Positions 7,878-64,000 of a stretch of 64,000 nucleotides of DNA are shown here, piece after piece. Position 1 is the stretch's first letter, and each line of letters begins with the position of its first letter. Location of the stretch: the NCBI RefSeq assembly GCF_035084215.1, contig NC_090340.1, positions 15,314,001 through 15,378,000 on the forward strand, given 5' to 3'. Source of the DNA: Heptranchias perlo. Its lineage: Eukaryota. The translations under genes were made by a program, and so were the position numbers. Below the pieces are notes generated by a model. That model was not told the origin of the DNA, did not search any database, and saw only the letters and a list, made by a program, of their open reading frames with translations.

Positions 7878-10800
7878 ACGGTAGCATAGTGGTTATGTTA
7901 CTGGGCTAGTAATCCAGAGGCCACGGCAGCTGGGGAATTTAAGTTCAATTAATTAAATTCAATTAATTAAATAAAATCTGGAATTAAAATACTAGTATCA
8001 GTAATGGTGGCCATGAAACTACCGGATTGTTGTAAAAACCCATCTGGTTCACTAATGTACTTTAGGGAAGGAAACATACCGTCCTTACCTGGTCTAGTCT
8101 ATATGTAACTCCAGACCCACAGCAATGTGGTTGATTCTTAATTGCCCTCTGAAATGGCCTAGCAAGCCACTCAGTTGTAAAACCTCGCTAAAAAAAAGTC
8201 ACAATAAGAATAAAACCGGATGGACCACCCGGCATCGGACCACTAGGCACTGGAAATGACAAAGGCAAACCAAGCCCAATCGGCCCTGCAAAGTCCTCCT
8301 CACGAACATCTGGGGACCTGTGCCAATATTGGGAGAGCTGTCCCACAGACTAGTCAAGCAACAGCCTGACCCAGCCATACTCACAGAATCATACCTTTCA
8401 TCCAATGTCCCAGACTCTTCCATCACCATCCCTGGGTATGTCCTGGCCCATAGGCAGGACAGATCTTTTAGAAGTGGCGGTACAGTGATATACAGTCAGG
8501 AGGGAGTGGCCCTGGGAGTCCTCAACATTGACTCTGGACCCCATGAAATCTCATGGCATCAGGTCAAACATGGGCAAGGAAATCTCCTGCTAATTACCAC
8601 CTACCGCCCTCCCTCAGCTGATGAATCAGTCCTCCACCATGTTGAACACCACTTGGAGGAAGCACTGAGAGTAGCAAGGGCACAGAATGTACTCTGGGTG
8701 GGGGACCACAATGTCCATCACCAAGAGTGGATCGGTAGCACCACTACTGACCGAGCTGGCCGAGTGCTAAAGGACATAGCTGCTAGACTGGGCCTGCGGC
8801 AGGTGGTGAGCGAATCAACACGAGGGAAAAAATTGTTTGACCTCATCCTCACCAATCTACCTGTCGCAGATGCATCTGTCCATGACATTATTGGTAGGAG
8901 TGACCACTGCACAGTCCTCGTGGAGATGAAGTCCCGTTTTCGCAGTGAGGACACCATCCAACGTGTTGTGTGGCACTACCACAGTGCTAAATGGGATAGA
9001 TTCAGAACAGATCCAGCAGCTCAAAACTGGGCATTCACGAGGCGTTGTGGGCCATCAGCAGCAGCAGAATTGTATTGCAGAACAATCTGTAACCTCATGG
9101 CCCGGCATATTCCTCACTCTACCATTACCAACAAGCTAGGGGATCAACCCTGGTTCAATGAGAAGTGTAGAAGAGCAGGCCAGGAGCAGCACCAGGCGTA
9201 CCTAAAAATGAGGTGCCAACCTGGTGAAGCTGCAACTCATGACTACATGCATGCTAAACAGCGGAAGCAACATGCTATAGACAGAGCTAAGCGATTCCAC
9301 AACCAATGGATCGGATCAAAGTTCTGCAGTCCTGCCACATCCAGTCGTGAATGGTGGTGGACAATTCAACAACTAACGGGAGGAGGAGGCTCTGTAAACA
9401 TCCCCATTCTCAATGATGGCGGAGTCCTGCACATGTATGCAAAAGGCAAGGCTGAAGCGTTTGCAACCATCTTCAGCCAGAAGTGCCAAGTGGATGATCC
9501 ATCTTGGCCTCCTCCATATATCCCCACCATCACAGAAGCCAGTCTTCAGCCAATTCGATTCACTCCACATGATATCAAGAAACGGCTGAGTGCACTGGAT
9601 ACAGCAAAGGCTATGGGCCCCGACAACACCCCGGCTGTAGTACTGAAGTCTTGTGCTCCAGAACTAGCTGCGCCTCTAGCCAAACTGTTCCAGTACAGCT
9701 ACAACACTGCCATCTACCCAACAATGTGGAAAATTATGTCCTGTCCACAAAAAGCAGGACAAATCCAATCCGGCCAATTACTGCCTCATCAGTCTACTCT
9801 CAAGCATCAGCAAAGTGATGGAAGGTGTCGTCGACACTGCTATCAAGCGGCACTTACTCACCAATAACCTGCTCACCGATGCTCAGTTTGGGTTCCACCA
9901 GGACCACTCGGCTCCAGACCTCATTACAGCCTTAGTCCAAACATGAACAAAAGAGCTGAATTCCAGAGGTGAGGTGAAAGTGACTGCCCTTGACATCAAG
10001 GCAGCATTTGACTGATTGTGGCACCAAGGAGCCCTAGTAAAATTGAAGTCAATGGGAATCAGGGGGAAAACTCTCCATTTGCTGGAGTCATACCTAGCAC
10101 AAAGGAAGATGGTAGTAGTTGTTGGAGGCCAATCATCCCAGCCCCAGAACATTGCTGCAGGAGTTCGTCAAGGCAGTGTCCTCAGCCCAACCATCTTCAG
10201 CTGCTTCATCAATGACCTTCCCTCCATCATAAGGTCAGAAATGGGGATGTTCGCTGATGATTGCACAGTGTTCAGTTCCATTCGCAACCCCTCAATTAAT
10301 GAAGCCGTCCGATCCCGCATTCAGCAAGACTTGGACAACATCCAGGCTTGAGCTCATAAGTGGCAAGTAACATTCGCGCCAGACAAGTGCCAGGCAATGA
10401 CCATCTCCAAAAATAGACAGTCTAACTACCTCCCCTTGACATTCAACGGCATTACCATCGCCGAATCCCCCACCATCAACATCCTGGGGGTCACCAGAAA
10501 CTTAACTGGACCAGCCATATAAATACCGTGGCTACAAGAGCAGGTCAGAGGCTGGGTATTCTGTGGCGAGTGACTCACTTCCTGACTCTCAAAGCCTTTC
10601 CACCATCTACAAGGCACAAGTCAGGAGTGTGATGGAATACTCTCCACTTGCCTTGATGACTGCTGCTCCAACAACTCTCAAGAAGCTCGACACCATCCAG
10701 GACAAAGCAGCCCGCTCGATTGGCACCCCATCCACCACCCTAAATATTCACTCCCTTCACCACTGGCGCACTGTGGCTGCAGTGTGTACCATCCACAGGA

Positions 10801-15935: not shown

Positions 15936-17339
15936 GGGTTATGTGGTTGAGGCGGCGGGGTGGGGGGGGGGCTGTTCTCTATTGTTGCAGTTGCTATTGT
16001 CCATATCTGAGAAAATCCATCAGGAACTTTATCGGAGATTGGTTATCTGAACCAATCAGAGAAGCATGACGTGTTAATTTGTGGAGTGTTGCTCTAATGC
16101 GAAGCTTTATCTATATTGTTCAAGTGTGGTCCGCGTGGATAGGGGCAATACATGAGACTTTTAATTCCATAGATTTTTTAAAGTTCTGCTCTAGATCTTC
16201 TCTGAAGCGGATACTCTTCAAACGGTGATACAGCCTGCAATGGGCAGGAACTTGAATAGGAAGAATGTTACCTTTCATTTTTCTTAACTCGTTCTTCCGT
16301 ATTGAGTATTTTACTTGCAACTCATTAGGCGGCCAATTTATGCTTAGCTAAATAACATTACCACTATAAAGCCAATTTGCACCACTTTAACGTGACAACC
16401 ATTAATGCGCTATATTCATTTTGGACAGAACCCGCGCGCTGATAACACAACAATAAATTTGGAGGTAAAGCCAGACTTCAAGGACACATCTGCAGCTGTA
16501 TAATGGGATCCTACGCTGTGTGTTTTTTGAACGTCGGAAAGTTAGAGAAATATAAAATGAACAATTGATAACAAAGAGGCTCACGGTTTGCAACGTCAAC
16601 GAGCTGCCCACAGAACGACGTTATAACAGCTCAGTACGTCACAGTGAACGGTTTCCGACACCAGCATCCACGCCCAATCATATGGCAAGGCACACGATCA
16701 CGTGATCACTGATCTTTCAGCTTTCATATTACTCATTTCGGTTTCGTGTCAAATCTACTGGGTATAAAACATTACAAAGCACAACATCAGTATAAAACCA
16801 CCTGGGGTGTGCAAGAAAGCCTACAAACTGCCGTATTAATCAGTCCTTTTCTCAACAACGTTTTTCAGAAAATATTGCTGCTTATTATTCAAAAGCTGAT
16901 TATGAACAATCTATGACGGACCCCACTTTGTAATGATTTCGCATTAGGTCACGTTAAAGTAGTGAGCAGAGGATGGCCAATGTGCGCATCAAGGTCTTGC
17001 GTAATTCACCGGAGAAGATCGCACTCGCACCTACATTCCGGCATTTGAAAGCATCAGGAAACGACACTGACTGCACGAGTTTTATTAAATTCTGCATTCG
17101 GAAAGCACAAATATTTTTCCTTACTCTTTTCTGTCCGTGAAACATGTGATTCCAACAGTCGAATAATGCAGAAGTTAGTGTATCGCACTGAACAAACGAA
17201 ACATCTGTTCTAAAGCCGCAGTTACAGGATGTCATACGACAGAGCGACGCATCTTATGAAAATCAAACCGCAAACCATTCTTAACAGCGGTAAACTCGTA
17301 ATTATTGCAGTGAGTCATCAGTTTAAACTGTTGCTCAGA

Positions 17340-17394
17340 ATGTCGACGAGTATGATGTTTCTGTGCTTGACGCTCCAGGGGATTTTTTACACAG
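17340..17394 (+). CDS. IgSF receptor copy 1, exon 1 (signal peptide MSTSMMFLCLTLQGIFYT)
   Basis: ATG at 17340, 55 nt, phase-1 donor ACAG|GTACCT; same length and donor as the copy 3 leader. Confidence 0.85.
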
Positions 17395-17563
17395 GTACCT
17401 CTTTATTCACAAGAACAGCTAATTTAATTACTAAACTGATTCCGAAGTAGTTTCCACATGAATGAAATGAACGTAATTCCTCTATCTAGATTCAATTTTC
17501 TCTTTTCCATCTCCATGTTGTATCTAATACAATTAACCCGGACTTGACTATATTTTCTGACAG

Positions 17564-17884
17564 CTGCGGACCACACTTCGTTCAGAGTGACTCAAGCGCC
17601 CGAACAGGCGACTGTATCCAGAGGGGGAAACATCACCTTCCACTGCATATTCCCCATCTCTCAAACCCATTCCTGGGCAAGAGTATATTGGTGGAAACAG
17701 GGTGAGAATAAATACCTGCACAGAAGCGCCGATAAGAGAAAACGATTTGGTCTGGAAGGTAAAGGGAGCGGTTTCTTTCAGTTGCTGAGCGCGACTTTCC
17801 AAGACTCTGGAGTCTATCACTGCGCAGTGATCCGAGAGGGAACAGTTGGAGGAAATGGAACCGGATCATATCTCATTGTGCATG
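17564..17884 (+). CDS. IgSF receptor copy 1, exon 2 (VJ-type V domain)
   Basis: Acceptor TTTTCTGACAG, donor G|GTAAGT, 321 nt phase 1/1; ITFHC, VYWWKQ, DSGVYHC, J-like GNGTGSYLIV. Confidence 0.93.
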
Positions 17885-18937
17885 GTAAGTGTGAAACACC
17901 GGAGAGCGGGACTGTTGTAAACATATCAAACATAACAAAAGGGAATGTTTTGTGATTGTTTTGTTGTACAGTTTTTGACAGTATAAACATTTCTGTGAAC
18001 ACATTTCGCGAGAAAGTTAAGTTGCATTTTCGTGTTCTCGATATAGAGCTTTCAATTAGAGAGTATAATATAACGCTCCACACCCAGGGTACTGCAAAAT
18101 GTATCAATATTAAGCAATTGGACTGTAACTCCAAATAAATTTATACACCAGATGCCTGATAGCGGAAGTTCGGATAAATTCCAAGCTGAGTGAAAATTGT
18201 TTATATTAATGCGCTTCCCCCACCATATACACGGCTCTTCGCCCATTTGGATGCTCTGTCTGCGCCGATGGCAGTCTCTGAGGTTTAACATTCTTGAAAT
18301 TAATTCTCACACGATGATTGGCTCGTTAGCGTCACGGATTTGAAAGCCAGCGTGCAACTGTTGATCAACGGATTCACTCAACAAATTGGAGCTTGGAATT
18401 CACAACTTTGTCGCCTCACTAACCCCCAATAAATAAAATAATACGCAGGAACTGTGTTGCTGAAACCTCCTGAGGTTCAACCGAATATAGTTTATTTCAC
18501 CAATTGTCATGCTTCGGCTGTGAGATCTGTCCGATACCGACTAATGCCCTCCTTTTATCATCGGCAATGTGTAGATTACTCGATTACTCGTCACCCTGTA
18601 ACTGAGTAAAAAAAAACAATGGCGAGACAAGGCGCGCCAACTTTCCCCCAGGGTTTATTTGCTTAATTATTTGGACTGTGAAACGCGACATTGATTACCG
18701 ATTGTTGCGACGTGTCTGCTGCATTATCGAGTCCAAAATTCAACGTTTTGGACTCGATAGCGCGTGTAAAATTGAACAGATGTCGGTGACGATGAATGAT
18801 ATGGTTGAGGTGTGTGTAGATGATGTGCCGAAAATTAAAAGGACAGGAGGCTGTGCTGTGGAAGGTAAATAAAAATCATATTTAATTTCTGCCAGTGGTG
18901 CCCAGTAACTCGATTTTGTTCATTGTCTGTTCCGCAG

Positions 18938-19243
18938 CTGCCCCAACTGCACTGAAGATTGCCTCGAGGACAGCTAAAGGGAATTCATCTGCGCCTCTGA
19001 CTCTTGTGTGTGAAACGGCTGAGTTTTATCCGGAGAATTTCACCCTCACTTGGTATAAAAATGCGGTCGAAACTACAACAGGAATACACACCATTAAACG
19101 GCAGAACACTGAGGGGCTGTATGAAGTTTCCAGCAGTTTGGAAGAGACGCAGCCTGTCCCGAGCGGCACGAATTATACCTGTTTGGTATCTCATGTCTCC
19201 CTTGAGACTCCAGCTGTTATCACCTATACTAAATTTAACCCAG
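18938..19243 (+). CDS. IgSF receptor copy 1, exon 3 (C1-set domain)
   Basis: 306 nt phase 1/1; LVCETAEFYP, LTWYKNA, GLYEVSSSL, YTCLVSH are C1-set motifs. Confidence 0.93.
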
Positions 19244-19384: not shown

Positions 19385-19503
19385 ATCCTGTCGGTATGTC
19401 CCCTTACTACTCGGGTTTTAGATATGCGCTGGGTGGTTTGGCGTTTCTAGTGCTCCTGGTCATCATCGGGACGCATTGCCAATTGCAGGTAAAAAAAAGG
19501 TAA
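19385..19503 (+). CDS. IgSF receptor copy 1, exon 4 (stalk, TM with Arg, short tail)
   Basis: Acceptor TTCTTGCAG; DPVGMSPYYSGFRYALGGLAFLVLLVIIGTHCQLQVKKR*; donors at 19488 and 19499, in-frame TAA 19501-19503. Confidence 0.88.
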
Positions 19504-19987
19504 GATCTACTGTAAGCGTTTGATTTTTATACAAAACTTCAGGGAGCGGTGGAGAGGGAAAGTGAGAGCCTCCGAATAACACAAAGGAGAACTCGATTAT
19601 GACTTAAACTTGAAGGCAGTGTTATCTGATTTCAGGGAACGCCGGTTGTTCCAGACAGTAATAGATTCTGCACTTTAAAACGCAGAAATCCTCAAAAATC
19701 AGATTAAAAATAGACGTGATTACCTGTGTATTTGCAACAAAAGTTTCCACTTTGCAGCGTGATAAATGAAATGTACCGTGACACACGATCACTTTCCAAA
19801 CCAGTGGGCTGTGGGTCCGCAATTCGTTTGAGCGAAGCGGTGTGAGGCTCCGGCTGGTAAATCACTGCTGATCTCTACAGGGGCTCGGATTCAAACATTG
19901 TCCGTAAGAATATCTTTGAAACCATTGATATGGAAACTCGGTAAATATTTCAATCATTCATTATGATTACATTTCATTAATTCACAG

Positions 19988-20016
19988 GTGAAAAAGATGT
20001 AACGGGATCAAAGCCG
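19988..20016 (+). pseudogene. Copy 1 former cytoplasmic mini-exon, now out of frame
   Basis: TTCACAG|GT...CCG|GTATGT; flanks align with the copy 2 exon 42206-42249; open only in phase 1 (GEKDVTGSKP), which neither exon 4 donor supplies. Confidence 0.7.
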
Positions 20017-20204
20017 GTATGTTCACTCATTCATTCCCACAAAGAGTTCAATTATGCAGAAAGATTGATATCATGGAGACATTTTATCATAATCATGTCA
20101 GAACAGTTTGCCTATTTCCTAGAAGTATTTGTTCCGCTTAATGGGTCATTCAAATCGTGTTCAGTAAAATATTTGACGCTGGCAGGGAAGGAGTTCACCC
20201 TCAA

Positions 20205-20308
20205 GGGCGAAATTGGCTTTCAGAAAAGTAAAGCCAGCGAGGTATAAAACGGGCGGTCGATTCCCTATCGCTCGTTTCCCGCTACCGCGGAAGACCAATT
20301 TCAACCCC
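20205..20308. mobile_element. Short MITE in a copy 1 intron
   Basis: TIR GGGCGAAATTGGCTTT ... AAGACCAATTTCAACCC; absent from the paralogous intron near 42370-42390. Confidence 0.6.
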
Positions 20309-20688
20309 GTCCTCGTTGCGTTGCTGCTTTAAATTGTCAAATAGCAGAAAAGAAAACTGTCTGTTTCATTGAAAATGCACCTAAGTAATAACTGTTTATA
20401 GATTCAACATTATTTTTAATTGGGGAAAAAATAAATGAATTTGTATTCTGGAACTACCGCCCATTGAAACATTTCTGTATTGTAGAATGAAGATTGTCAG
20501 CTTTAAATAGTTGTTATAGTGACCACAGTATTCACCGGTCTTAACATTTGCACTTATGTAACTGTATTAATTATGGTTTCTGTACTTCATCTCTAGCCTA
20601 AGTTGTTCTGTCTAATGGTTAGCCAGTATTCTGTAAACTGGTGAACTAGCCACATTACAAAACATATACTTGTTTCTGGCCCATGCAG

Positions 20689-21092
20689 GAGGCAAAGGCT
20701 GATATCGTTGATACGCTGCAGCAAGTTTGACCAGAACCAAAGAAACTCCAAGACGTAAGCTTGCAGAGAAAAGGACTGTGTATAATCAGTCGGGGCGGGA
20801 AGCGGATCAGACAGATACAGATCATCAGTGTAGCACCAAAATTCATGCGATAACGGAGAATATTAGGCTGGCTGACTCTGGTGGTTTATTGTATCTAAAG
20901 CTGTTCGTGTGTTATTCTGATGATTGTTTTCGGCAGCAGTCGTCAAATTGGCAAAACGACCAATTAACAAAATTTCCAAACATGGGTTTACAGACCAAAC
21001 AAGGCACCTTCGCGACTCTAGAATTGTCAGTCCAAAAAACGGGGAAATCCAAAAAAAAACAGAGAAACACGTTCCAGTATTATATCATTTAA
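20689..21092 (+). pseudogene. Copy 1 decayed cytoplasmic ITIM exons A (20689-20789) and B (20994-21092), probably now 3' UTR
   Basis: Align with copy 2 exons 42773-42874 and 46416-46588; 1-nt deletion, lost donor, motifs changed to YAAA, YNQ(S/T), TFATL. Confidence 0.78.
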
Positions 21093-21152
21093 TGTGGGTG
21101 CAATTGTTTGTTTCTGCTTAAATATTTGAGGAATTTTAATTTATTTACTTGT

Positions 21153-21158
21153 AATAAA
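21153..21158 (+). terminator. Probable polyadenylation signal of copy 1
   Basis: AATAAA in TACTTGTAATAAAAA, the same context as in copy 2 at 46880-46885. Confidence 0.55.
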
Positions 21159-21610
21159 AATGCACTTACGTTACACATTTTTTGAACATTCTGCAGTTTT
21201 TAATAGATGACAAATCTCTGCAACGCTACACTAATTGTTTTGCTGTACCCAGTTATTATCGTGCATAATTTCAATAAAAAGATGTTCTGCGATTTCTCTC
21301 TTTTCACCATTAGTGATACTTTTTCTTCGCGAGTAACACCCCAGAACTTGGGTTTTGATTTATGTGTTGCCTTACTGCATTCAGGAATCCAGTCCAGGCG
21401 ATTCTCCTGATGTGGAAGGCAGGACGCTCCAGTCTATGGACTGGTCCATAAACCCACTGAACCCAGTTTGCAGTTGATGGAGCATGAGTATGCCTTTCTC
21501 TAAACTCTGTATGAATATTCATTCCTATCCGAAACGATGCTCCCAGACAATTCCAAGTGGCTTCCAAAGGAAAGGCCCCGATTATTCTCATTAAGATCTA
21601 TCTTCAAGAG

Positions 21611-22389
21611 TAAAGAATCTTACAACACCAGGTTATAGTCCAACAAATTTATTTGAAAATCACAAGCTTTCGGAGGCTTTCTCCTTCGTCAGGTGAATGT
21701 GGAAATGAAATCATTGAACGTTTCGCATTTATATTCAGAGAACAATACCTGGTGATTACAGATAATCTTTCCAACTGCCCGTTGTCAAGGCAATCAAAGG
21801 GTTCAGACAGAGAGGTGTTACGTACAGGACCACCGAATTTACAAACGGCCAGAACACAAAACAGAGAGAGAGAGGGAGAAACATTCTAAAGGAACAGAAA
21901 GACAGAAAATGACCCGTTGTATTAAAAACAGATAACTTTTATTCGCTGGTGGGTTTACGTGTAGCGTGACATGAACCCAAGATCCCAGTTGAGGCCGTCC
22001 TCATGGGTGCGGAACTTGGCTATCAATTTCTGCTCGACGATTTTGTGTTGTCGTGTGTCTCGAAGGCTGCCTTGGAGAACGCTTACCCGAAGATCGATGG
22101 CTGAATGTCCTTGACTGCTGAAGTGTTCCCCGACTGGGAGGGAACCCTCCTGTCTGGCGGTTGTTGTGCGGTGTCCGTTCATCCGTTGTCGCAGTGTCTG
22201 CATGGTCTCGCCAATGTACCATGCTCCGGGGCATCTGTTCCTGCAACGTATGAGGACACGTTCACCTGACGAAGGAGAAAGCCTCCGAAAGCTTGTGATT
22301 TTCTAAAAAATATTTGTTGGACTATAACCTGGTGTTGTAAGATTCTTTACATTTGCCAACCCCAGTCCATCATCGGCATCTCCACATCA
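21611..22389 (-). mobile_element. Penelope-like element, truncated, with inverted terminal repeat and 12-bp TSD
   Basis: Minus ORF 21955-22203 is a GIY-YIG C-terminus (ETMQTLRQRMNGH...EQKLIAKFRT..GLN); about 90-bp inverted repeat 21611-21700 / 22256-22349; TSD TATCTTCAAGAG at 21599-21610 and 22390-22401; empty site in copy 2 near 47340. Confidence 0.9.
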
Positions 22390-33474: not shown

Positions 33475-36400
33475 CTCAATGGTGGTGGAGTCGAGCACGT
33501 GAGTGCAAAAGACAAGGCTGAAGCGTTTGAAATTATCTTCAGCCAGAAGTGCCGAGTGGACGATCCATCTCGGCCTCCTCCCGATATCCACACCATCACA
33601 GAAGCCAGTCTTCAGCCAATTTGATTCACTCCACGTGATATCAAGAAACGGCTGAGTGCACTGGATACAGCAAAGGCTATGGGACCCGACAACATCCCGG
33701 CTTTAGTGCTGAAGTCTTGTGCTCTAGAACTAGCTGCTCCACTAGCCAAGCTGTTCCAGTACAGCTACAACACTGCCATCGACCCAACAATGTGGAAAAT
33801 TGCCCAGGTATGTCCTGCCCACAAAAAGCAGGACAAATCCAATCCGGCCAATTACTGCCCCATCAGTCTATTCTCAATCATCAGCAAAGTGATGGAAGGT
33901 ATCGTCGACAGTGCTATTAAGCGGCACTTACTCACCAATGACCTGCTCACTGATGCTCAGTTTGGGTTCGGCCAGGACCACTCGGATCCCGTCCTCATTA
34001 CAGCCTTGGTCCAAACATGGACAAAAGAGCTGCATACCAGAGGTGAGGTGAGAGTGACTGCCCTTGACATCAAGGCAGTATTTGACCGAGTGTGGCACCA
34101 AGGAGCCCTTGTAAAATTGAAGTCAATGGGAATCAGGGGGAAAACTCTCCAGTGGCTGGAGTCATTCCTAGCACAAAGGAAGATGGTAGTGGTTGTTGGA
34201 GGCCAATCATCTCAGCCCCAGGACATTGCTGCAGGAGTTACTTGGGGCAGTGTCCTAGGCCCAACCATCTTCAGCTGCTTCATCAATGACCTTCCCTCCA
34301 TCATAAGGTCAGAAATAGGGATGTTCGCTGATGATTGCAGAGTGTTCACTTCCATTCACAATCCCTCAAATAATGAATCAGTCCGAGTCCACATGCATCA
34401 AGACCTGGACAACATCCAGGCTTGGGCTCATAAGCGGCAAGTAACATTCGCGCCAGACAAGTGCCAGGCAATGACCATCTCCAAAAAGAGAGTGTCTAAC
34501 CACCTCCCCTTGACATTCAACGGCATTACTATCGCCGAATCCCCCACCATCAACATCCTGGGGGTCACCATTGACCAGAAACTTAACTGGACCAGCCATA
34601 TAAATACTGTGGCTACAAAAGCAGGTCAGAGGCTGGGTATTCTGCGGCGAGTGACTCACCTCCTGACTCCCCAAAGCCTTTCCACCATCTACAAGGCCCA
34701 AGTCAGGAGTGTGCCTTGTAGATGGTGGATAGAAAGAGTATCTACAGTTATATAAAAAGAAAAAGGGTGGCTAAGGCAAACGTAGGTCCCTTAGAGGATG
34801 AGACCGGGAAATTAATGGTGGGAAACATGGAGATGGCAAAAATGCTGAACAAATATTTTGTTTCAGTCTTTACGGTAGAGGATGCGAAGAATATCCCAAC
34901 ACTGGACAAACAGGGGTCTCTAGGGGGGGAGGAGCTAAATACGATTAAAATTACTAAGGAATTGGTACTCAGTAAATTAATGGGACTCAAGGCGGATAAA
35001 TCCCCTGGACCTGATGGCTTACATCCTAGGGTCTTGAGGGAAGTGGCAGTAGGGATTGTGGATGCTTTGGTGATAATTTTCCAAAATTCTCTGGACTCGG
35101 CAAAGGTCCCGGCAGATTGGAAAACTGCTAATGTAACACCCTTATTTAAAAAGGGTAGTAGGCAGAAGGCTGGAAATTATAGACCAGTTACCCTAACATC
35201 TGTGGTGGGTAAAATTTTGAAGTCTATTATTAAGGAGACAGTAGCAGAATATTTGGATAAACATAATTTAATAGGACAAAGTCAGCATGGCTTTATGAAG
35301 GGGAAGTCATGTCTGACAAATTTGCTTGAGTTCTTTGAGGATATAACGTACAGGGTGGATAAAGGGGGACCAGTGGACGTAGTGTATTTAGACTTCCAGA
35401 AGGCATTCGACAAGGTGCCACATAAAAGATTATTGCTCAAGATAAAGAATCACTGGATTGGGGGTAATATTCTGGCATGGGTGGAGGATTGGTTATCTGA
35501 CAGGAAGCAGAGAGTTGGGATAAATGGTACATTCTCGGACTGGCAACCAGTAGCCAGTGGTGTTCCGCAGAGGTCGGTGCTGGGTCCCCAACTCTTTACA
35601 ATCTATATTAACGATTTGGAGGAGGGGACCGAGTGTAACATATCAAAGTTTGCAGATGATACAAAGATGGGAGGGAAAGTAGAGAGTGAGGAGGACATAA
35701 AAAACCTACAAGGGGATATAGACAGGCTGGGTGAGTGGGCGGAGATTTGGCAGATGCAATACAATATTGGAAAATGTGAGGTTATGCACTTTGACAGGAA
35801 AAATCGGAGAGCAAGTTATTATCTTAATGACGAGAAGCTGGAAAGTACTGCAGTACAAAGGGATCTGGGGGTCCTGGTGCAAGAAAATCAAAAGGTTAGT
35901 ATGCAGGTGCAGCAGGTGATCAAGAAGGCCAACGGAATGTTGGCTTTTATTGCTAGGGGGTTAGAATATAAAAACAGGGAGGTATTGCTGCAGTTATATC
36001 AGGTATTGGTGAGACCGCACCTGGAATACTGCATACAGTTTTGGTGTCCATACTTAAGAAAAGACATACTTGCTCTCGAGGCAGTACAAAGAAGGTTCAT
36101 TCGGTTAATCCCGGGGATGAGGGGGTGGACGTATGAGGAGAGGTTGAGTAGATTGGGACTCTACTCATTGGAGTTCAGAAGAATGAGAGGCGATCTTATT
36201 GAAACATATAAGATTGTGAAGGGGCTTGATCGGGTGGATGCAGTAAGGATGTTCCCAAGGATGGGTGAAACTAGAAGTAGGGGGCATAATCTTAGAATAA
36301 GGGGCTGCTCTTTCAAAACTGAGATGAGGAGAAACTTCTTCACTCAGAGGGTGGTGGGTCTGTGGAATTTGCTGCCCCAGGAAGCTGTGGAAGCTACATC

Positions 36401-39410: not shown

Positions 39411-41856
39411 TTATTTGTTCACTTTTATTAGAGCAACTACCTAAGTAAACTTATTATTCTGTAATGGCATGCGCCCACGAGCACTGCACTGCCTCAGTTT
39501 TGCACCTCGCTGGTCCTCAGCCTGTACTTCAGCGTAACTCTTATGCCCATACTTCTCTGGTTTCTAGATGGTCATTAGATTTGCTATTTAACTATGAATA
39601 ATTATATAAACTAAAAGTTTATGTAAATAAGGACAGAATTTATGATTTCAACATGGAGATTGAATTAATTCTGCGTGACCTGGGTCAATTATTTCTCAAC
39701 CCTCAACCGCTCCTTCATGGAAACACAATCCTTGGTCTTGGCTCCCTGCCACGACCTGAAGTGCCGAGAATTGTTCCTGACTCCACTCTCAGCGCGTCCG
39801 GACCCAAACGATCTGGTTGCACTTCAGTCTTTCTTCATTCGTCCAGTTCATTTCCTCTGTTGCTATTTTTTGATTCTTCTACTGCGCTGGCCGAATCTGG
39901 CTGTGTTGGTGTGGGTCGTACTGTAAAGAATTCGACTCTGCAAAGTTTGAATTCTTCATTTGGGTTCGACCACAAATGAATGGACTTTAGGCGTTGGGAA
40001 CAGGCTGCAAATGCTTCGTCGTGGAATGGCCAGGGTGCAGAAGTGACCTCCCCACTTATTCCAGCAGTCTACTCACTCGGTCCATATATTTTCACGAAAA
40101 TCGTTTCAGAGAAGTTTGAAGTGTTTATATTTTATTTTGTTTTTGTTATACAAAAAGGACCCTTATTTTCATTGTCCAAAGATGGCCTCTCTGGGGGTTT
40201 TCATTCCCGGCGCTACAATCCAATCTCGAACTCACAATTCCTCTAATTCCCACCTCTTATGCGCCCCCTCCCTTTGTCCTACCATTGCTGGTCATTCTTT
40301 CGGCCGTCGAGGCCCCATCTACCACAGTTTCCTCCCTAACATCGTTTCCTTTAAGAGACTCCTTAAATCACACCTCTTTGACCAAGCTTTCGGCCGCACC
40401 AGGTAGTGTCTCCTTCTTTGGTTCGACGTCATTTTTTCCTTCCGCTCTTGCGAAGCCCCTTGAGACGTTTTCTTCTATCATAAAGGAGCTATAAAAATAC
40501 AGATTCTTGGAGGTTTCTGGTTTTGATTGGCAGCATTCGCTACTCTGCATATTGAGCAAATCCATCAGGTAAACTTAAGGGAGAGTGATTATTTGAATCA
40601 ATCAGAAAAGTATTAGGTGCTAATTTTTGGATTAATGCACTTACATACATTTTTAAAATGCAGTGTCAATGGACACGAGAAATATGAGAGCCCTTTAAGA
40701 GGCCCTTAAAATAACGGCGAAGCCTCCATTGCACTTCACGCTCGAATGAGGGGAATATTTCCCTCAGCCGTTCCCATGCTCGGGCAGTGTGTGCTGCCCG
40801 ACATCCATCTGGTCCCTCCTTTTATTCTGGGTAATGCACAGATTTTTCGTTTCTCTCTTGGGGAGACAATCAAACAGAGCCAGAGTTATTAATAAATAGG
40901 GAAAGACTGATAATGGCATCCATCTCTCAAATCCAACGTCTAATATCTCCCCAGTAACCTGATTTTCCCCATTGTCTGTTCGACAGCTGCCCCAACTCCA
41001 CTGAAGATTGTTTCCAGAACACCCGAGCCAAATCGTCTGCCTCTCTGACTCTTGTGTGTGAAACGGCTGAGATTTACCCGGAGGATTTCATCCTCACTTG
41101 GTATAAAAATGGCGTCAAAACCACAGCTGGGATAAATATTACTAAACGACAAAACACTGGGGGTCTGAATGAAGTTTCCAGTCCTTTGGAAGAGACGCAG
41201 CTTAACCGAAATGGCTCTGTTTACATCTGTTTGGTAACTCATGTCACCCTCCAGACACACACCATTGTAACCTACACTGTAAGCAATTCCAACCCAGGTA
41301 AGAGGTCAACAGGCCAAGAACTGAGGTCAGCTACTGTTAAATACTGAAAAGGTATTTCATAGAGTTTGTTCATATTGATAATCGTAAGATAATTTGAATA
41401 AAATTCCCGGGAAAGCAAACTGAAAATTCATGTTTCAATGTAATGTATTATTGACCTGAACCTGTTGTAAAACCGGAAGTAATATTATCGCTCTCCACCC
41501 AGAAACTGCCAGTGAAACCTCGACAGCTTCTCAAAATGCCATGGCGGTGTTTGAATCACCTTCTCTGGATTGTAAGTCCACGCCTCTGGATTAAAAGTTC
41601 AGTAACATAAGCACTACCCTACCGTACCCTTATATTGCTAGATATTTAACTGTGGGGGCTAAACTAGGGAACACTGGTAAAAAGTAGTAAATGATAATTT
41701 TAAGAATGATGTCAGGAATTTCTTCTTCACAAAGATCAACATGTGGAATAAACTTGCAGACTCAGCAAAGGAGGCAAAAGACCGAGAATCCTTTAACAAA
41801 TAGCTGGATTCTACATCGGGGAAACATTTTCATCAGGGTGGATGAATTAAATTCTA
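37760..41856 (+). repeat. Segmental duplication, paralogous to 55209-64000 (copy 2 versus copy 3 unit)
   Basis: Colinear similarity across a shared CR1-CR1 junction (TTCCATCCAAA.CTCTCTGAAC), unique DNA 39410-40200 / 56890-58060, an L2 tail 40200-40510 / 58060-58345, the C1 exon and intron. Confidence 0.92.
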
Positions 41857-44800
41857 CTGTTTTGCCTATGTAGTTCAATGTCGTATTGGCTTTGTCCACT
41901 GCTGCTCTGCTTGGATGGACATGTGGTTAGCGTCCAGTCTACTAAGACTCCTAAGTCTCTTTTAGTTCCATCCTTAGCTATTTCAATGCAATCCATGGAA
42001 TACATGTATAGTTTAATTTTCCTTCCCATCCGTAGTAATCTACTCTTCTCTGCATTGAATTTCATCTGCTATTGCTCTGCCCACCTATATATCTAAATTC
42101 ATGTTAAGCTTTACATTGATTCTAAAAATACTTTTGAAAGCATAAACATGGAAATTGAATAAACATTTTAATCATTGAGTGTGATCAAATATCATTAATT
42201 CCCAGGTAAACAGAATAGGGTAAGAACACCGCACCGCAATGAAGAGCTGGTAGGTTCATATCATTCATCCAGGAAGAGAGTTCGAATTTAAATAAATATT
42301 GTTATGATGGAGATATTTTATCAAAAGTAATTGTCCCTCTTTGATGAGTCATTCAAATCGTGTTTTGAAAATTAATTGGCACTTGTTGCAATGCTGGTGT
42401 AACTGGTTAAACAAAGATTTTTTAAAAATAAAATTGGTAGCTTTATTCAACATTTACCTAGGTAATAATTATTTGTAAATCCATCTAATCCTTGCTTTTG
42501 GAATCTGACATTACACGTCTAAGATTCTGAAACTACCTCTTGTTTAATCATATCTGTAACACTGTATAGTGGTGAAAATTGATAGGTTGAAATGTCAGTT
42601 ACAGTGGACACACTATTTACCGGCCTTAATATTCGCATAATTCTAAAATATATTAACTGTGGTTTTATTTGTAGTCCCGATCATTCTGTGCAATATTTCA
42701 TCAGCAGTCTGTAAACGGGCGAAGGCACTGAACTAGCCACATAACAAGACAATTTCCTTCTGGCCCGTGCAGGGAGCAGAGAGTGAGATGGCGCCTTATG
42801 CTGCATTAGATGTGAGCAAAGCCAAGAAAACCCCAGGACGTAAACTTGAAAAGGAGAGGGCAGTATACGCTCAGGTACGGCAGAGAAGCAGATAAGGGAA
42901 ACATAAATCACCACTGTGGCACTAACATTCATGGAATAGCGGAGTATTTTGGGTTATAGAAGTGGCTGATCCTTTATCTGAATACCATATTCCCGCTCTC
43001 TCCCCATACCCCTTTTGTGTCTAGAAATCTATCTGGCTCCTTCTTAAATATATTCAGTGACTTGGCCTCCATTGCCTTCTGTGGTAGAGAATTCCACAGG
43101 TTCACCAAATTCTGAGTGAAGAAATTTGTCCTTATCTCAATCCTAAATGTCCTACCGCATATCCTGAGACTGTGAGCCCTTGATCTGGACAGCCCAGCCA
43201 GGGGAAACATCCTCCCTGTATCCAGTCTTTCTAGCCCTGTCAGAATTTTATATGTTCAATGAGATACCCTCTCATTCTTCTAAAATCGAGTGAATATAGG
43301 CCGAGTCAACCCAATCTCTCCTCATATGACAGTTCTGCCATCCCAGGAATCAGTCTGGTGAACCTTCTATGGAAAGTATATCCTTTCTTAGTTAAGGAGA
43401 TGAAAACTGCATACAATACTCCAGGTGTGGTCTCACCAAGACCCTGTATAACTTCAGTAAACATCGTTGCTCCTGTACTCAAATCCTCTTGCAATGAAGG
43501 CCAACATAACAGTTGCCTTCCTAGTTACTTGCTGCACCTGCACGTTTGCTTTCAGTGACTGGTGTTCAAGGATACTCAGGAACATCAACATTTCACAATC
43601 TACCCCATTTAATAAATCGCTGCCTTTCTGTTTTACCTTCCGAAGTGGATAACTTCACATTTATCCATATTATACTGCATCTACCATGTATTTGCCCACT
43701 CACTCAACTTGCCTAAATCGCCTTGAAGCCTCTTTGCATCACCCTCACAACTCACGATCCCACCTAGTTTTATGTCATCAGCAAACTTAGAAACATTACA
43801 TTTCGTTCCCTCATCCAAATCATTGCTATATATTGTAAATAGCTGGGGCCCAAGGACCGATCCCTACCGTACCCCACTAGTCGCTTCCTGCCACCCCGAA
43901 AAAAAAACATTTATTCCTACTCTCTGTTTCCTGTCTGTTAACCAATTTTCAATCCATGCCAGTATATTACCCCCAATCCCATGTGCTTTAATTTTGCATA
44001 CTAACCTCTTATGTGGAATTTATCAAAGGCCTTCTGAAAATCCAAATAAACCACATTCACTGGTTCTCCCTTATCTATTCTACCAGTTACATCCTCAAAA
44101 AACTCCAGTAGGTTTGTCAAACACGATTTCCTTTTCATAAATCCATGTTGACTTTGTCCAATCCCGTTGATATTTTCTAAGTGTCCTGTTATCACATCCT
44201 TTATAATAGACTCGAGCATTTTCTCTACTATTGATGTTAGGCCAGCTATAGTTCCCTGTTTTCTATCTCCCTCATTTTTGAAATAATGGGGTTACATTTG
44301 CCACCCTCCAATCTGCAGGAACTGTTCCATAATCTACAGAATTTTGGAAGATGACAACCAATGCATCCATTATTTCCAAAGCTACCTCTTTTAGTATTCT
44401 GGGATGCAGATTATCAGGCCCTGGGAATTTATCGGCTTTCAGTCCCATTAATTTCTCCAACAGTATTTTTTTACTAATACTACAACCCTTTAGTTCCCCC
44501 TTCTCACTAGTCCCTTGGTTCCCTAGCATCTCTGGGAAGTTATTTGTGTCCTCTTCCGTGGAGACAGAACCAAAGTATTCGTTTAATTGCTCTGCCATTT
44601 CCTTGTTCCCCATTATAAATTCTCCCGTTTCTGACTGTAAGAGACCTACATTTGTCTTCACTAATCTTTTTCTTTTTACATACTTGTAGAAGCTTTTACA
44701 GTCCACTTTTATGTTCCTTGCAAGTTGACTCTCATACTCTATTTTCCCCCTTTTAATCAATCTCTTGGTCCTTTTTTGCTGAATTCTAAACTGCTCCCAA

Positions 44801-46588
44801 TCCTCAGCCTTGTTACTTTTTCTGGCAACTTTAAGTGACTTCTCTTTGGATCTAATACTATCCTTAATTTCTTTTGTTAGCCATGGTTGGGCCGCTTTTC
44901 CTATTGTGTTTTTGCGTCAGAAAGGAAAGTATATTTGTTGCAATTCATGCATTCGTTCCTTAAATGTTAGCCATTGCCTCCCCACCAGCATGCCTTTTAA
45001 TGAAGCTTCCCAGTCTATCATAGCCAACTCACTGCTCATACCTTCGTAGTTTCCTTTGTTTAGATTTATGACCCTAGTTTCGGATTGACCTACTTCACTT
45101 TGCATCTTAATGCCGAATTCTATCGTGTTATGTTCACTCTTCTCTAAAGGTCCCCGCACAACAAGATTATTAATTAATCCCTTCTCATTGCACAATACCC
45201 AACCTAGGATAGCCTGTTCCCTGGTTGGCTCCTCAACATACTCTGAAAAACCATCTCGCACACTCCAGGAATTCATCCTCCACATTATTATTGCTAATTT
45301 AGTTTGGCCAGTCTACATGTAGATTAAAGTCACCCATGATTACTATAGTACTCTTGTTACATGCATCTCTAATTTCCTGTTTGATGCCGTTTTCTACATT
45401 ACCACTACTGTTTGGAGGCCTATAGACAACTCCCACCGGTGTTTTCTGCCCCTTTGTGCTTCTTAACTTCACCCAGACTGATTCTACATCTTGATTTTCT
45501 GAGCCAATATCCTTTCTCACTATTGCTCTGATTTCATCCTTTACTAACGCCAGACCACCTACTTTACCTTTTTGCCTGTCCTTCCTAAATATCGAATACC
45601 CTTGGATATTCAGCTCCCAGCCTTTGTCACCCTGCAGCCATGTCTCTGTAATTGCAAATATATCGTATGGGTTTACATTTATTTGTGATGTTAATTCATC
45701 TACATTATTGTGAATGCTTCGTGCATTCAGATGCAGTGCCTTTAGATTTGTCTTTTTAACATTTTTAGACATCTTAAAAAAATTTTGTGCTATGGCCCTA
45801 TTTGTCTTAATACCATTTTTTCTTACCCGGACCCTATTTGTTAGTGCACTCTTTTGTTTGTACGCTCTGCCCTTCCTGACACAATCTGATTAACCTTACC
45901 CCAATCACTTTCCTGCACTGCTTCTTTGTCTTTTCTCTTTAGCATTCTAGATTTCTCTCCACCGGGACTCTTCCCCCCACCCCACCCCCACTTATTTAGT
46001 TTAAAGCCCTATGTACCTCACTAGTTATTCGATTTGCTTGAACTCTGGTCCCAGCATGGTTCAGGTGTAGACCGTCCCAACGGAACAGCTCTCTCTTTCC
46101 CCAGTACTGGTGCCAGTGCCCCACGAATCGAAACCCACTTCTTCCACACCAATATTTGAGCCACGCATTCATCTCTCTGATCTTAGTTACCCTATGCCAA
46201 TTTGCTCGTGGCTCAGGTAATACTCCAGAGATTAATACCTTTGCGCTTCTGCTTTTTAATTTAGTCCCGAGCTGCTCAAACTCTCAGTTGTGCTGACTTT
46301 AACCGTATTTTGTATCTAAAGCTATTTGTGAGTTATTCGGATGACTATTTTGAGCAGCATTCCACAAACTGGCAAAAAGACCAATCAACAATACTTCCAA
46401 ACATTGGCTTTTCGGGTAAAACAAGGAAGAGCCCGTGACAAACTGACGTACGCGATCTAGAATTGTCTGGCCCCGAGAAAGCGGGGAAATCTAAAAATAA
46501 CCGAAAAAGTACAGAATTAGGCGAACTACAGACGAAAAAACAAAGAGGAGTAACAGAGGTCGTTTACACAGAAGCAAGAACCAAATAG
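40987..46588 (+). pseudogene. IgSF receptor copy 2 pseudogene: frameshifted C1 (40987-41297), cytoplasmic exons 42206-42249, 42773-42874 (read-through stop 42895), 46416-46588; no leader, V or TM
   Basis: C1 is 311 nt versus 312 in copy 3 (GAG CC AAA versus GAG AGC AAA); exon A reads GAESEMAPYAALDVSKAKKTPGRKLEKERAVYAQ; exon B has a CGG acceptor and a 1-nt deletion. Confidence 0.88.
42958..46286 (-). mobile_element. CR1, near-complete disrupted ORF2, in the last intron of copy 2
   Basis: ORFs 45299-45772 (APE), 44917-45285, 44272-44760, 44001-44219, 42974-43210; flanks rejoin to match the 204-bp copy 1 intron 20790-20993. Confidence 0.92.
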
Positions 46589-59345: not shown

Positions 59346-59400
59346 ATGTTGTGGAGTGTGATATTTCTGTTCCTGTCTCTCCGGGGAATTAGATTCACAG
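59346..59400 (+). CDS. IgSF receptor copy 3, exon 1 (signal peptide MLWSVIFLFLSLRGIRFT)
   Basis: 55 nt, donor ACAG|GTACCT, homologous to the copy 1 leader. Confidence 0.85.
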
Positions 59401-59593
59401 GTACCTGTTATTCTCTATCCCAGCTGTCTCAATAAAAACACATCTGAAGGAGTTACCACTTGAATTGAATGAGATTTATTTCGTCCATCTATATTCTTTT
59501 TCCTCTAACTTATTTCCATGTACAAATATTTTCCAAAGTGTCTGGTTCCACATAGAATATAAATAACCAAATGTTTCATATATTTTCGAACAG

Positions 59594-59902
59594 CTGCTGC
59601 ACGTATTTCACAAACACCCGAAAAGATGATTGCATTAAGGGGGACAGACATCACCTTCTACTGTATAATCCCCCTCTCTCATGAAAACTCATGGGTAGAA
59701 GTGCGTTGGTGGAAACAGGGTGAGAACGAATATCTGCAAATAGGCGACGATAACAGAAAACGATTTGGTGTCAAAAATAAAGGAGCTGGTTTCTTTGAGC
59801 TGCGGAACGTGACTTTCCAGGATTCTGGAATCTATCACTGCACAGTGACCCGTCAGGGAAGAGTTAGTGAAAATGGAACGGGCTCAAATCTAATTGTGTG
59901 CG
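59594..59902 (+). CDS. IgSF receptor copy 3, exon 2 (VJ-type V domain)
   Basis: 309 nt phase 1/1; ITFYC, VRWWKQ, DSGIYHC, ENGTGSNLIVC; donor G|GTAAGT. Confidence 0.93.
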
Positions 59903-60736
59903 GTAAGTGACTGGGATGAGCGGGAACGTCCAAATGTATCAGATGTAACAAGAGGTCATTTTGTGATTGTTTTATTGTACATTTTTTGACAGTATGAAAC
60001 ATTTATTTTAATACATTTACAGTCAAACTCAATGTTACTCCGATGTCTCTGTACACAGCTGCCAAATACGCGGCATAAAATGGCGCTTCATTTGCTGAGT
60101 TTTGTGAAATTCCATCAATATTAACCAGATTAAGTAACATGTTACTGGATTCATCTCAAAATGTCGTTTCTACATCAGACTTCTGAGGAGGGAAGGTGCG
60201 GAACAAATTCCAAATATATTGATGACTGACTGAAAATACTTTATATTATTGCGCCATTTATACGGCTCTTACCTTATTTTAGAAGCTTTGTTTGTCCCTG
60301 TCACTGTCGGAGAGGTTTAACGGTCTCTCCTGAAATTAATGCTCACAAAATGACAGGCTGGTTCGATTGGCTGATTTCAAATCAGATGTAATTAACTCAA
60401 CAAACGGCACCATGAACCAAAATATCGCCGCCTCTTTCGTCTCCAATAAATAAAATATTCCCCAGACACTGTGCGGCTGATGCTTTCTGAGATTGAATGG
60501 AATGTAATTTCCTTCAGCCATTCCCATGCTCGGGCAGTGTGAGCTCTCCGATAATCATTTGGTCCCTCCTTTTATTCTCGGAAATGTACAGATTTTTCGT
60601 TTCTCTCTTGGGGAGACAGTCAAACAGAGCCAGAGTTACTAACAAACAGGGAATGACTGAGAATGGCATTCATCTCTCATCTCTCATCTCTCAATATCTC
60701 CCAGTAACCTGATTTTCCCATTTCTCTGTTCGACAG

Positions 60737-61048
60737 TTGCCCCAACTCCACTGAAGATTGTCTCCAGGACACCCGAGAGCAAATCGTCTGCCTCTCTGAC
60801 TCTTGTGTGTGAAACGGCTGAGTTTTACCCGGAGGATTTCACCCTCACTTGGTATAAAAATGGCGTCAAAACCACAACTGGGATAAATATCACTAAACGG
60901 CAAAACGCTGGGGGTCTGTATGAAGTTTCCAGTTCTTTGGAAGAGAAGCAGCTTAAGCGGAATGGATCTGTTTACATCTGTTTGGTAACTCATGTCAGCC
61001 TACCGACACCCGCCATTGTAACCTACACTGTAAGCAATTCCAACCCAG
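60737..61048 (+). CDS. IgSF receptor copy 3, exon 3 (C1-set domain)
   Basis: 312 nt phase 1/1, open; LVCETAEFYP, WYKNG, YICLVTH; donor CAG|GTAAGA. Confidence 0.93.
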
Positions 61049-62200
61049 GTAAGAGGCCAACAGGCCAAGAACTGAGGTCAGCTACTGTTAAATACTGAAA
61101 AGGTATTTCATAGAGTTTGTTCATATTGATAATCGTAAGACAATTTGAATAAAATTCCCGGGAAAGGAAACAGAAAATTCCTGTTTCAATATAATATATT
61201 ATTGACCTGAACCTGTTGTAAAACCGGAAGTAATATTATCGCTCTCCACCCAGAAACTGCAAGTTAAACCTCGACTGCTTCCAAATTGTTAAAAAAAATG
61301 AGCAGGGATTTTATCTTTTCTATCCAATTATTTTATGTCTCTTGCTTATTACTAAACATTCTAATTTGTCCTCTTGTTAAAGTGTTTTTATTCTATCGCA
61401 TTATATTCTTTCCTTACATGAGCTGCAGGACCAGGAGCTGCAGTTCGGTGTCTGCCATCGAGCCTCTTCTGGTGCGGCTCCTGATTCCGAGCGCTGTTGG
61501 GCGATTCATTGTGAATGGGTCAGAAATCGACCTTGTGGATAGGCCGTAATCTGACCCCTCCAGGATACAGAAGTTTGGAGCGGGATCCCATTTCATACCT
61601 TTCATTCAGGCCCTGCCCCAGATCTGTCTGTACTACAACCGGGTGCAAAGCATCGTTTTATTAACAACCATTTTTCTGTAATTAACAAATAATCGTGTGC
61701 TGGTTTCCTTTCCTATTCAGTGACAGTCTTATTTCGGTAAATACGCTGCAGATAATTGAATTGACGTTTAAACCAATTGATACAATCAGCCTTTTTTCTC
61801 AAACAATGGCGAGTCACATGTCGCTGACTGGCCCTGATTTCATCAAACAAGCGCTTAAGAGCAGAAGAAAAGTCAATTCGAAGAGCAAGCCATTCGGTCC
61901 ATCGAAACTTATTCTTCTAGAATTCCAACTTTCCCAAACCAATCTTCAGAACACCCTAAACTGGTTCCCTCCGTCGCAGATTATTCCGGTCATGTGTCAC
62001 CCTTTTTGACAAGAAGCTCCTTTTGATATCAGTTCTAAAAAGATAAATTAAGATTATTTTCAAATTCCGACGTACTCGTGCTATAATGCGGAGTTACTGT
62101 AAATATGAACAGTAGTTCAACCAACCAAAGTTATCCCGACGTCTCCATTTAGGTAACGTCCGCCACAAATTAGAACTCTATGTTGCTTTTCATCTTGCAG

Positions 62201-62311
62201 ATCGTGACGGTAAATATCGTTACCTTTGGGGTGTTGGATGTGCGGTGGGTGAATTGGCGTTTCTCGTGCTCATAATCATCATTGGGACAAGATGCAATTT
62301 GACGAATAAAC
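62201..62311 (+). CDS. IgSF receptor copy 3, exon 4 (stalk, TM with Glu); gene continues beyond the window
   Basis: Acceptor CATCTTGCAG, donor C|GTAAGT, 111 nt phase 1/1; DRDGKYRYLWGVGCAVGELAFLVLIIIIGTRCNLTNK; aligns without gaps to the copy 1 TM. Confidence 0.88.
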
Positions 62312-63992: not shown

Positions 63993-64000
63993 AAATTCTA

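Follow-up and report, generated by a model that had tools for sequence, protein, structure and literature searches.

An old Arg-type transmembrane exon joined to a young ectodomain in a putative activating receptor gene of Heptranchias perlo

The stretch of DNA analysed here, 64,000 nucleotides (nt) from Heptranchias perlo (RefSeq assembly GCF_035084215.1, contig NC_090340.1, positions 15,314,001 to 15,378,000 of the forward strand; hereafter the window), contains three copies of one immunoglobulin (Ig) receptor gene, all on the + strand. We focus on copy 1, which the original prediction had described as apparently caught converting from an inhibitory into an activating receptor. Our comparisons point to an older history, and we give about an even chance to the reading that copy 1 belongs, structurally intact, to an old, putatively activating branch of paired receptors, marked by an arginine (Arg) in the transmembrane (TM) segment, within a VJ-C1-TM family of sharks, rays and a chimaera. 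The coding exons of copy 1 are the following.

17340..17394, + strand: leader exon, with the ATG at 17340 and a phase-1 donor CAG/GT
17564..17884, + strand: V exon (VJ-type), open, Pfam V-set E 2e-9
18938..19243, + strand: C1-set exon, open, Pfam C1-set E 4e-13
19385..19499, + strand: TM exon, with the donor GT at 19500-19501

These exons, which were searched and compared individually and not as one joined protein, encode a signal peptide, a VJ domain, a C1 domain and a TM segment that carries an Arg close to its outer edge. The V exon carries the Cys, Trp and YxC positions and a J-like motif, GNGTG..LIV. All four exons are open and bounded by AG and GT, as had been stated beforehand, and they are joined at the phase-1 junctions of the family. 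The junctions 17394/17564 and 17884/18938 recur exactly in spliced contigs of paralog RNA in the same sample. Within their 797 nt there are 0 stops, 0 frameshifts and 0 lost splice sites, so that the lesions which would mark a pseudogene occur in copy 1 only behind its stop codon.

Copy 1 encodes the Arg by AGA at 19420-19422, whereas copy 3 has GGA (Gly) at the aligned codon, 62236-62238, in agreement with the difference first noticed between the two copies. The TM exon ends in GTA AAA AAA AG/GTAAGA, where a run of eight A (A8, 19491-19498) makes it 1 nt longer than the phase-1 end found in copy 3 and implied by the H. perlo proteins. Reading through the TM donor gives AGG TAA, with the stop TAA at 19501-19503; splicing to a relic mini-exon gives AGG TGA, with the stop at 19989-19991; and use of an alternative donor CAG/GTAAAA (19488/19489) gives VKKM followed by a stop. 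The predicted early end of the tail was thus found on all splice routes checked, each of which reaches a stop within 1-4 codons. The cytoplasmic tail has about 10 residues on every route and, as expected of the activating partner of a receptor pair, contains no Tyr and neither an immunoreceptor tyrosine-based inhibitory motif (ITIM) nor a switch motif (ITSM). When the run is read as A7 instead of A8, a stop follows in relic exon A after 32 residues, again with 0 Tyr.

In H. perlo, intact tails are made of four parts: the TM exon contributes its end, and a mini-exon GKQGRVMGPTRHEEL, an exon reading IVHYAAL...TVYAQ and a final exon carrying the motifs LTYATL...TDYAEL...AVYSEARIK follow. Behind the stop of copy 1, counterparts of the last three are recognizable, followed by a poly(A)-signal block.

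19988..20016, + strand: relic mini-exon, AG and GT kept, 15-nt in-frame deletion
20689..20789, + strand: relic tail exon A, 1 nt deleted and a TGA present directly ahead of the Tyr
20994..21092, + strand: relic last exon, acceptor kept, 18-nt deletion, new stop at 21090-21092
21145..21160, + strand: block TTACTTGTAATAAAAA with the ancestral poly(A) signal, the same sequence as copy 2 46872-46887

The relics are homologous to copy 2 (blastn E 1e-24), the mini-exon corresponding to copy 2 42206-42249 and to GKQGRVMGPTRHEEL in the H. perlo protein P0157, and a second block (21066-21078 in copy 1, 46793-46805 in copy 2) is colinear with the poly(A) block. That the ancestral tyrosine motifs are damaged relative to copy 2 was confirmed. 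In exon A, YAAL has become YAAA, next to the 1-nt deletion, and VYAQ has become VYNQ, while the donor is lost by a change of GT to TC (CAG/TC); in the last exon LTYATL reads GTFATL, and a deletion of about 280 nt has removed the distal motifs TEYAxL and VVYTEA. The earlier account needs a correction on copy 2, which is itself a pseudogene fragment that lacks leader, V and TM exons and has a frameshifted C1 exon. Altogether about 230 of about 330 nt survive in the relic exons, with at least 5 indels, the lost donor and new stops. The nucleotide identity between exon A and copy 2 is 65.7%, compared with 68-71% in its flanks, and over all relic exons it is 52-69%, compared with 68-80% in the flanking introns. 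The relic exons are therefore no better kept than the introns around them, which argues against a conversion in progress. As judged from this divergence, the inhibitory tail exons of copy 1 are long-decayed relics, which are perhaps still readable owing to the slow change of shark DNA. Directly behind the 3' end of copy 1 lies a short-repeat inverted pair (tcttacaacaccaggttatagtccaac...cacaagctttcggaggc) at about 21590-21700 and 22260-22380.

A full HMMER scan with the V exon of copy 1 returned 178 cluster representatives at E <=0.001, 79 of them at E <=1e-10. By their names, the family members come from sharks, rays and one chimaera, and belong to the genera Scyliorhinus, Mustelus, Heterodontus, Heptranchias, Carcharodon, Chiloscyllium, Stegostoma, Hypanus, Hemitrygon, Mobula, Pristis, Leucoraja and Callorhinchus; their NCBI labels include SIRP-alpha-like, SIRP-beta-1-like and tapasin-related-like, among others. 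Copy 1 has a leader, a single V exon of VJ type, a single C1-set exon and a TM exon built like xGCAxGGLAFLVLxIIIG, and this make-up identifies it as a member of this chondrichthyan VJ-C1-TM receptor family, in which inhibitory members bear a tail of the form mini / YAAL...VYAQ / LTYATL...TEYAEL...VYSEA that copy 1 retains only as the damaged relics behind its stop. Our search of the full-text literature, including two papers on shark VJ-C1 genes, found no description of this family.

Three kinds of family member can be distinguished. The first has long tails with several Tyr motifs and a Gly or other small residue at the column of the copy 1 Arg; the second has Arg at that TM column and short tails; the third has a different TM exon (R...IIVDH), also with short tails, and extends from the chimaera to sharks. 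Arg in the same column occurs in short-tailed proteins of Scyliorhinus, Mustelus, Heterodontus, Hypanus and Hemitrygon. Tyr motifs were present in 4 of 17 members with a basic residue in the outer part of the TM segment and in 25 of 38 members without one (Fisher p 0.0075, only indicative since the rows are related), and the median tail length was 33 residues in the former and 93.5 in the latter. Across the family, a basic residue in the outer TM segment thus goes with the loss of tyrosine motifs. The Arg-type TM exons of rays resemble the inhibitory exons of rays, and those of subfamily B (S. canicula, Mustelus) resemble, Arg aside, the exons of copy 3 and of Heterodontus P0178. These likenesses indicate that Arg-type genes arose more than once in the family, and the expectation that activating forms arise repeatedly holds for these other lineages.

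The third kind represents a second activating-type TM exon, with an outer Arg, an inner end of the form (V/F/M)DH or VEH (IIVDH in several) and short tails. It is carried by P0163 of Callorhinchus, P0169 and P0052 of H. perlo, P0045 of Carcharodon, P0069 of S. canicula and P0065 of Chiloscyllium. The exon of this type in H. perlo P0169 was sought in the 64-kb window and was not found there.

The ectodomain and the TM exon of copy 1 have different relatives. The V domain is 91% identical to that of H. perlo P0157, which places it near an inhibitory counterpart in the same genome, as expected of paired receptors; the C1 domain is 83% identical to P0157 and 80-85% identical to H. perlo P0162 and P0169. 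A tree of V domains joins copy 1 to H. perlo P0157, P0159 and P0162 (support 99/90) and places the catshark (Scyliorhinus canicula) protein XP_038661932.1 (P0001) with its galeomorph relatives. In contrast, the TM exon of copy 1 shares only about 50% identity with the TM exons of P0157 and P0162, its nearest ectodomain relatives, and its best match is XP_038661932.1, with 76% identity over 29 amino acids. That protein has the same GFRY Arg and a 5-residue tail (...YYSGFRYTVGGLAFL...ARYKSR-stop, from an exon ...DYVGMSRYYSGFRYTVGGLAFLLLLIIAGARYKSR-stop). In a TM-exon tree built without the Arg column, copy 1 and XP_038661932.1 form a clade with support of 96/94. An approximately unbiased (AU) test, in which the constrained group was named after the tree had been seen, rejected the placement of copy 1 with the H. 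perlo inhibitory TM exons (p 0.018). The corresponding test on V did not reject a grouping of copy 1 with P0001 (p 0.16), so that V alone cannot separate orthology plus homogenisation from a plain species-wise grouping. Between copy 1 and the catshark gene, identity is 61-76% in the TM exon and 67% in the ectodomain.

The relic tail agrees with the TM exon. Its surviving residues are 44-49% identical to P0157 and other intact H. perlo tails, whereas the tails of functional paralogs at a similar ectodomain distance are 71-93% identical; tail identities of 42-49% are otherwise seen only between the most distant family members. From the grouping of its sequence, the TM exon of copy 1 shares ancestry with the catshark Arg-type exon, which places copy 1 in an old activating-type branch and not in mid-conversion. 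Since TM exon and relic tail are distant from the inhibitory paralogs to which V and C1 are near, copy 1 appears as a mosaic of an old Arg-type TM and 3' end with an ectodomain close to that of inhibitory paralogs. A gene caught converting is not what the 96/94 clade with the catshark and the intron-level divergence of the relics describe, and the proposal of an independent event of this lineage by a change of GGA to AGA is not supported, given the rejected grouping. What stands of the earlier view is the derivation of an activating form from an ITIM-bearing ancestor, for which the hallmarks are present (the Arg column, the Tyr-free tail and the relic ITIM exons); its timing and its course as an in-place conversion are not supported.

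Several observations weigh against copy 1 being a working member of such a branch. The RNA evidence consists of contigs from three small runs of the same sample, and contigs drop rare forms. In these three runs we found no contig at least 99% identical to copy 1, although transcripts of its paralogs were present; as only contigs could be compared, this is weak negative evidence, and the absence of a transcript that had been named as a refutation is in part what was found. Nor was the copy 1 protein present in a set of 5.8 billion proteins. In the C1 exon, the ratio of nonsynonymous to synonymous differences (pN/pS) between copy 1 and an expressed P0162-like paralog is 0.97, with 22 of 28 differences known. 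By hydropathy, the best 19-residue window begins directly after the Arg, which would then occupy position -1. An Arg-type GFRY exon is known from only one other species, in a gene model with an odd N-terminus; a search with the TM-exon part of P0001 matched only P0001, a blank made uninformative by the short region and the huge database. Finally, the Mustelus asterias protein XP_078066431.1 (P0026) combines Arg in the same column with a long tail containing LAYASL (an ITIM). An Arg in ITIM-bearing paralogs had been named as a further refutation, and this one paralog provides it in part; P0026 may be a dual-signal form like KIR2DL4, or an intermediate.

The RNA contigs do show that paralogs of copy 1 are expressed in the sampled tissue. 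Over 17333-19243, contigs of runs X1 and X3 are 90-96% identical in nucleotides to the ectodomain exons of copy 1. One represents an expressed P0162-like paralog with an inhibitory TM exon: when its 22 listed differences are applied to the C1 exon of copy 1, the translation equals P0162 at 97 of 101 residues, the four mismatches fall where six unlisted differences of the contig could lie, and the contig continues into ASVIDVSLYFW, the TM exon of P0162. By this agreement the window comes from H. perlo or a near-identical source, and P0157, P0159, P0162 and P0169 are best read as paralogs of copy 1. Another contig, with 96% identity across the leader and the beginning of V, is probably from the P0157 gene. 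The pN/pS of 0.97 fits relaxed constraint as well as diversifying selection. Between copy 1 and copy 3, ratios of this type are 0.60 for V, 0.40 for C1 and 1.0 for the TM exon, with dS near 0.5; these values, which do not isolate the copy 1 branch, show past constraint on the Ig domains.

One alternative is that copy 1 is a dying or dead gene that is not expressed, with a tail that decayed first and ectodomain exons that only look intact, having been copied recently from functional paralogs or being too young to have acquired lesions. We consider this explanation a serious one, though doubtful. It would account for the missing transcript where paralogs were seen in the same sample, for the missing annotated protein, for a pN/pS of about 1 in C1 and for a frame that ended by a +1 slip in the A8 run, and it suits a locus full of LINE insertions in which the neighbouring copy 2 is clearly a pseudogene. 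Moreover, with paralog contigs at 90-96% nucleotide identity, few lesions of the ectodomain would be expected yet. Against it, the lesion-free exons contrast with the decay accumulated in the relics, and the hydrophobic core of the TM exon is still clean, with the Arg that the catshark also has; as no close paralog could have refreshed this exon, we count its preservation for function. Missing annotation says little, since copy 3 looks intact and its protein is equally absent from the protein sets.

A second alternative is that copy 1 is expressed and needs no adaptor, serving as a short-tailed decoy or adhesion-type receptor whose Arg is an interface residue outside the bilayer. The hydropathy window, taken by itself, suggests that the Arg may sit at the membrane interface, and several family members (P0160, P0062 and P0031 among them) have short tails and no TM charge. 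However, the Arg recurs at the exact column in short-tailed members of both sharks and rays, and the cytoplasmic KR anchor seen in inhibitory paralogs sets the helix such that the column falls 5 residues within it. In known partners of FcR-gamma, such as NKp46, Fc-alpha-RI, GPVI and PIR-A, the Arg is equally near the outer edge of the membrane. The position in copy 1 is typical of a membrane-embedded Arg, short of proof, and we regard an uncoupled receptor as improbable.

Least probable is a recent and independent conversion in place, in which an inhibitory gene has just gained its Arg and is now losing its tail: one transition from GGA, the codon of the Gly found in copy 3 and many inhibitory relatives, would be enough, the truncating change is a simple homopolymer slip and such events have occurred elsewhere in the family (among rays, and among the subfamily B genes of S. 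canicula and Mustelus), but the TM exon differs at about half of its residues from the closest ectodomain relatives and matches the catshark instead, the relics are far below the tail identity expected and have diverged like introns, and their lesions are multiple and independent (four indels, the donor loss and the deletion of about 280 nt).

Returning to copy 1 as an intact member of the old Arg-type branch, we propose how such a gene could operate. Gene conversion or exchange would keep its ectodomain like that of a P0157- or P0162-like inhibitory partner, as happens in other paired receptors; we infer this from the pattern of identities. The Arg would pair with a membrane Asp of a putative adaptor with an ITAM (immunoreceptor tyrosine-based activation motif), of the FcR-gamma, CD3-zeta or DAP12 kind, and the same ligand would then yield an activating signal through that adaptor. 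The truncation may be fixed by the phase-2 end of the TM exon. A stable mRNA could arise by read-through, with an ATTAAA at 19703, or by splicing into the relic exons; with the donor of exon A lost, the stop would lie only 26 nt before the last junction, and nonsense-mediated decay would be escaped.

More tentatively, we suggest that the family may possess a built-in switch, in which the change of the TM Gly (GGA) to Arg (AGA) together with loss of the tail was repeated independently in sharks and rays. The GFRY exon would then predate the squalomorph-galeomorph split and sit on ectodomains repeatedly overwritten from inhibitory partners, and the relic ITIM exons would persist as the 3' untranslated end, providing a poly(A) signal and, through the loss of the donor, escape from decay. 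This fuller account is possible rather than probable.

The remaining features of the window comprise the other two gene copies and LINE-type open reading frames (ORFs).

40987..41297, + strand: copy 2 C1 exon, frameshifted by a 1-nt deletion
42206..46588, + strand: copy 2 tail exons (mini-exon 42206-42249, exon A 42773-42874, last exon about 46416-46588)
59346..62311, + strand: copy 3 gene (leader 59346-59400, V 59594-59902, C1 60737-61048, TM 62201-62311)
33679-36488 and 8320-9867, and 2115-3032 (-) and 55461-56402 (-): LINE-type ORFs (reverse transcriptase, endonuclease)

The window is repeat-rich DNA of vertebrate type with LINE reverse-transcriptase and endonuclease ORFs and without N stretches, and the receptor cluster is embedded in retrotransposon-rich DNA. 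Copy 2 (region 40661-46888) is a partial duplicate of a copy 3-like gene, with 92% nucleotide identity over 784 nt around C1, from which the leader, V and TM exons have been lost. In its last tail exon the acceptor is mutated, and a stop and a deletion of 1 nt occur; the span of its tail exons also includes a 3.3-kb repeat insertion. Its tail exons are still 62-64% identical to intact, functional H. perlo tails, and its sequence marks it as a young pseudogene. Copy 3 has a TM exon with a phase-1 donor, and its tail falls past the end of the window. The comparison originally drawn with copy 3 stands for the Gly codon, but needs the correction that the TM core of copy 3 has a Glu (GAA, 62251-62253) at its centre, a position that is Gly (GGLAFL) in all relatives examined. 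This Glu is either an acidic TM residue with its own function or a first lesion of an otherwise intact gene. A repeat of about 330 nt occurs in three copies that are 90-91% alike, at 41528-41856, 62765-63085 (inverted) and 63674-64000. Two of them form an inverted pair 3' of the copy 3 TM exon; the other occupies the site of the lost TM exon of copy 2, which suggests a repeat-mediated deletion.

Paired inhibitory and activating receptors have been well studied in mammals (KIR, Ly49, SIRP, PIR and LILR), where activating forms arise repeatedly from inhibitory ones and are thought to be short-lived. The locus described here shows the same paired-receptor logic in one of the oldest living lineages of jawed vertebrates, and for what looks like a frozen conversion in copy 1 the better reading is an old exon of Arg type to which a young ectodomain is joined. 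If the switch reading is true, adaptor-coupled paired receptors of the FcR-gamma type would be placed at the base of the jawed vertebrates. If copy 1 is expressed, it would offer a simple system for asking which ITAM adaptor cartilaginous fish use, and whether the homogenisation of partner ectodomains is as old as the jawed vertebrates.

Among known systems, UrIg and UrIg2 of cartilaginous fish resemble copy 1 in having a non-rearranging VJ exon followed by C1 exons (PMC12227049), and UrIg2 is the best solved-structure match of the copy 1 C1 domain (9dmx, E 9e-16). UrIg2 of the nurse shark has nine domains of C1 type, and the paper on it (PMC12227049) describes neither ITIM nor paired forms. 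We rejected an assignment of copy 1 to UrIg or UrIg2, which constitute a different family of multi-C1 genes.

The gene of catshark XP_038661932.1 agrees with copy 1 in family, domain order, the TM exon DxVGMSxYYSGFRYxxGGLAFL with its Arg, and an R-stop after a few residues. It differs in its V domain, only 67% identical to that of copy 1, and in a model N-terminus without a signal peptide.

SIRP-alpha and SIRP-beta are similar to the family in several respects, namely a VJ-type V domain followed by a C1-set domain, a long tail with four Tyr in one partner versus a short tail with a basic TM residue in the other, and ectodomains of the pair that are kept similar. SIRP-alpha (2wng) was among the matches of C1 (E 2e-9). 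However, copy 1 has a single C1 domain where SIRP has two, and SIRP-beta uses Lys and DAP12. Antibodies, PD-L1, UrIg2 and tapasin-related protein match the V and C1 domains of copy 1 at scores equal to or better than those of SIRP. Membership in the SIRP family proper was rejected on the single C1 exon and on the best matches, which were UrIg2, antibody C domains and tapasin-related protein.

In the position of the Arg, copy 1 resembles the receptors that couple to FcR-gamma. NKp46, Fc-alpha-RI, PIR-A, LILRA and GPVI have an Arg 3-5 residues into the TM segment from the outside and a short tail, and the RMGLAFLVL of NKp46 resembles RYALGGLAFLVL of copy 1. Their Ig domains are of the C2/I-set and their genes lie in the leukocyte receptor complex, unlike the VJ and C1 domains of copy 1.

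The mode of origin may be compared with that of activating KIR (KIR2DS/3DS) and Ly49. These derive from inhibitory ancestors; their TM segment bears a basic residue, a frameshift or stop has shortened their tail, and sequence that once coded for the ITIM remains downstream. Such forms originated repeatedly within a single family, as in the family of copy 1. Copy 1 differs from both in its VJ and C1 domains, where KIR have D0-D2 and Ly49 a lectin domain, and in an Arg at the outer edge of the membrane, where theirs is a Lys in mid-membrane. It also differs from activating KIR, which are short-lived, in an Arg-type exon that is apparently common to distant sharks.

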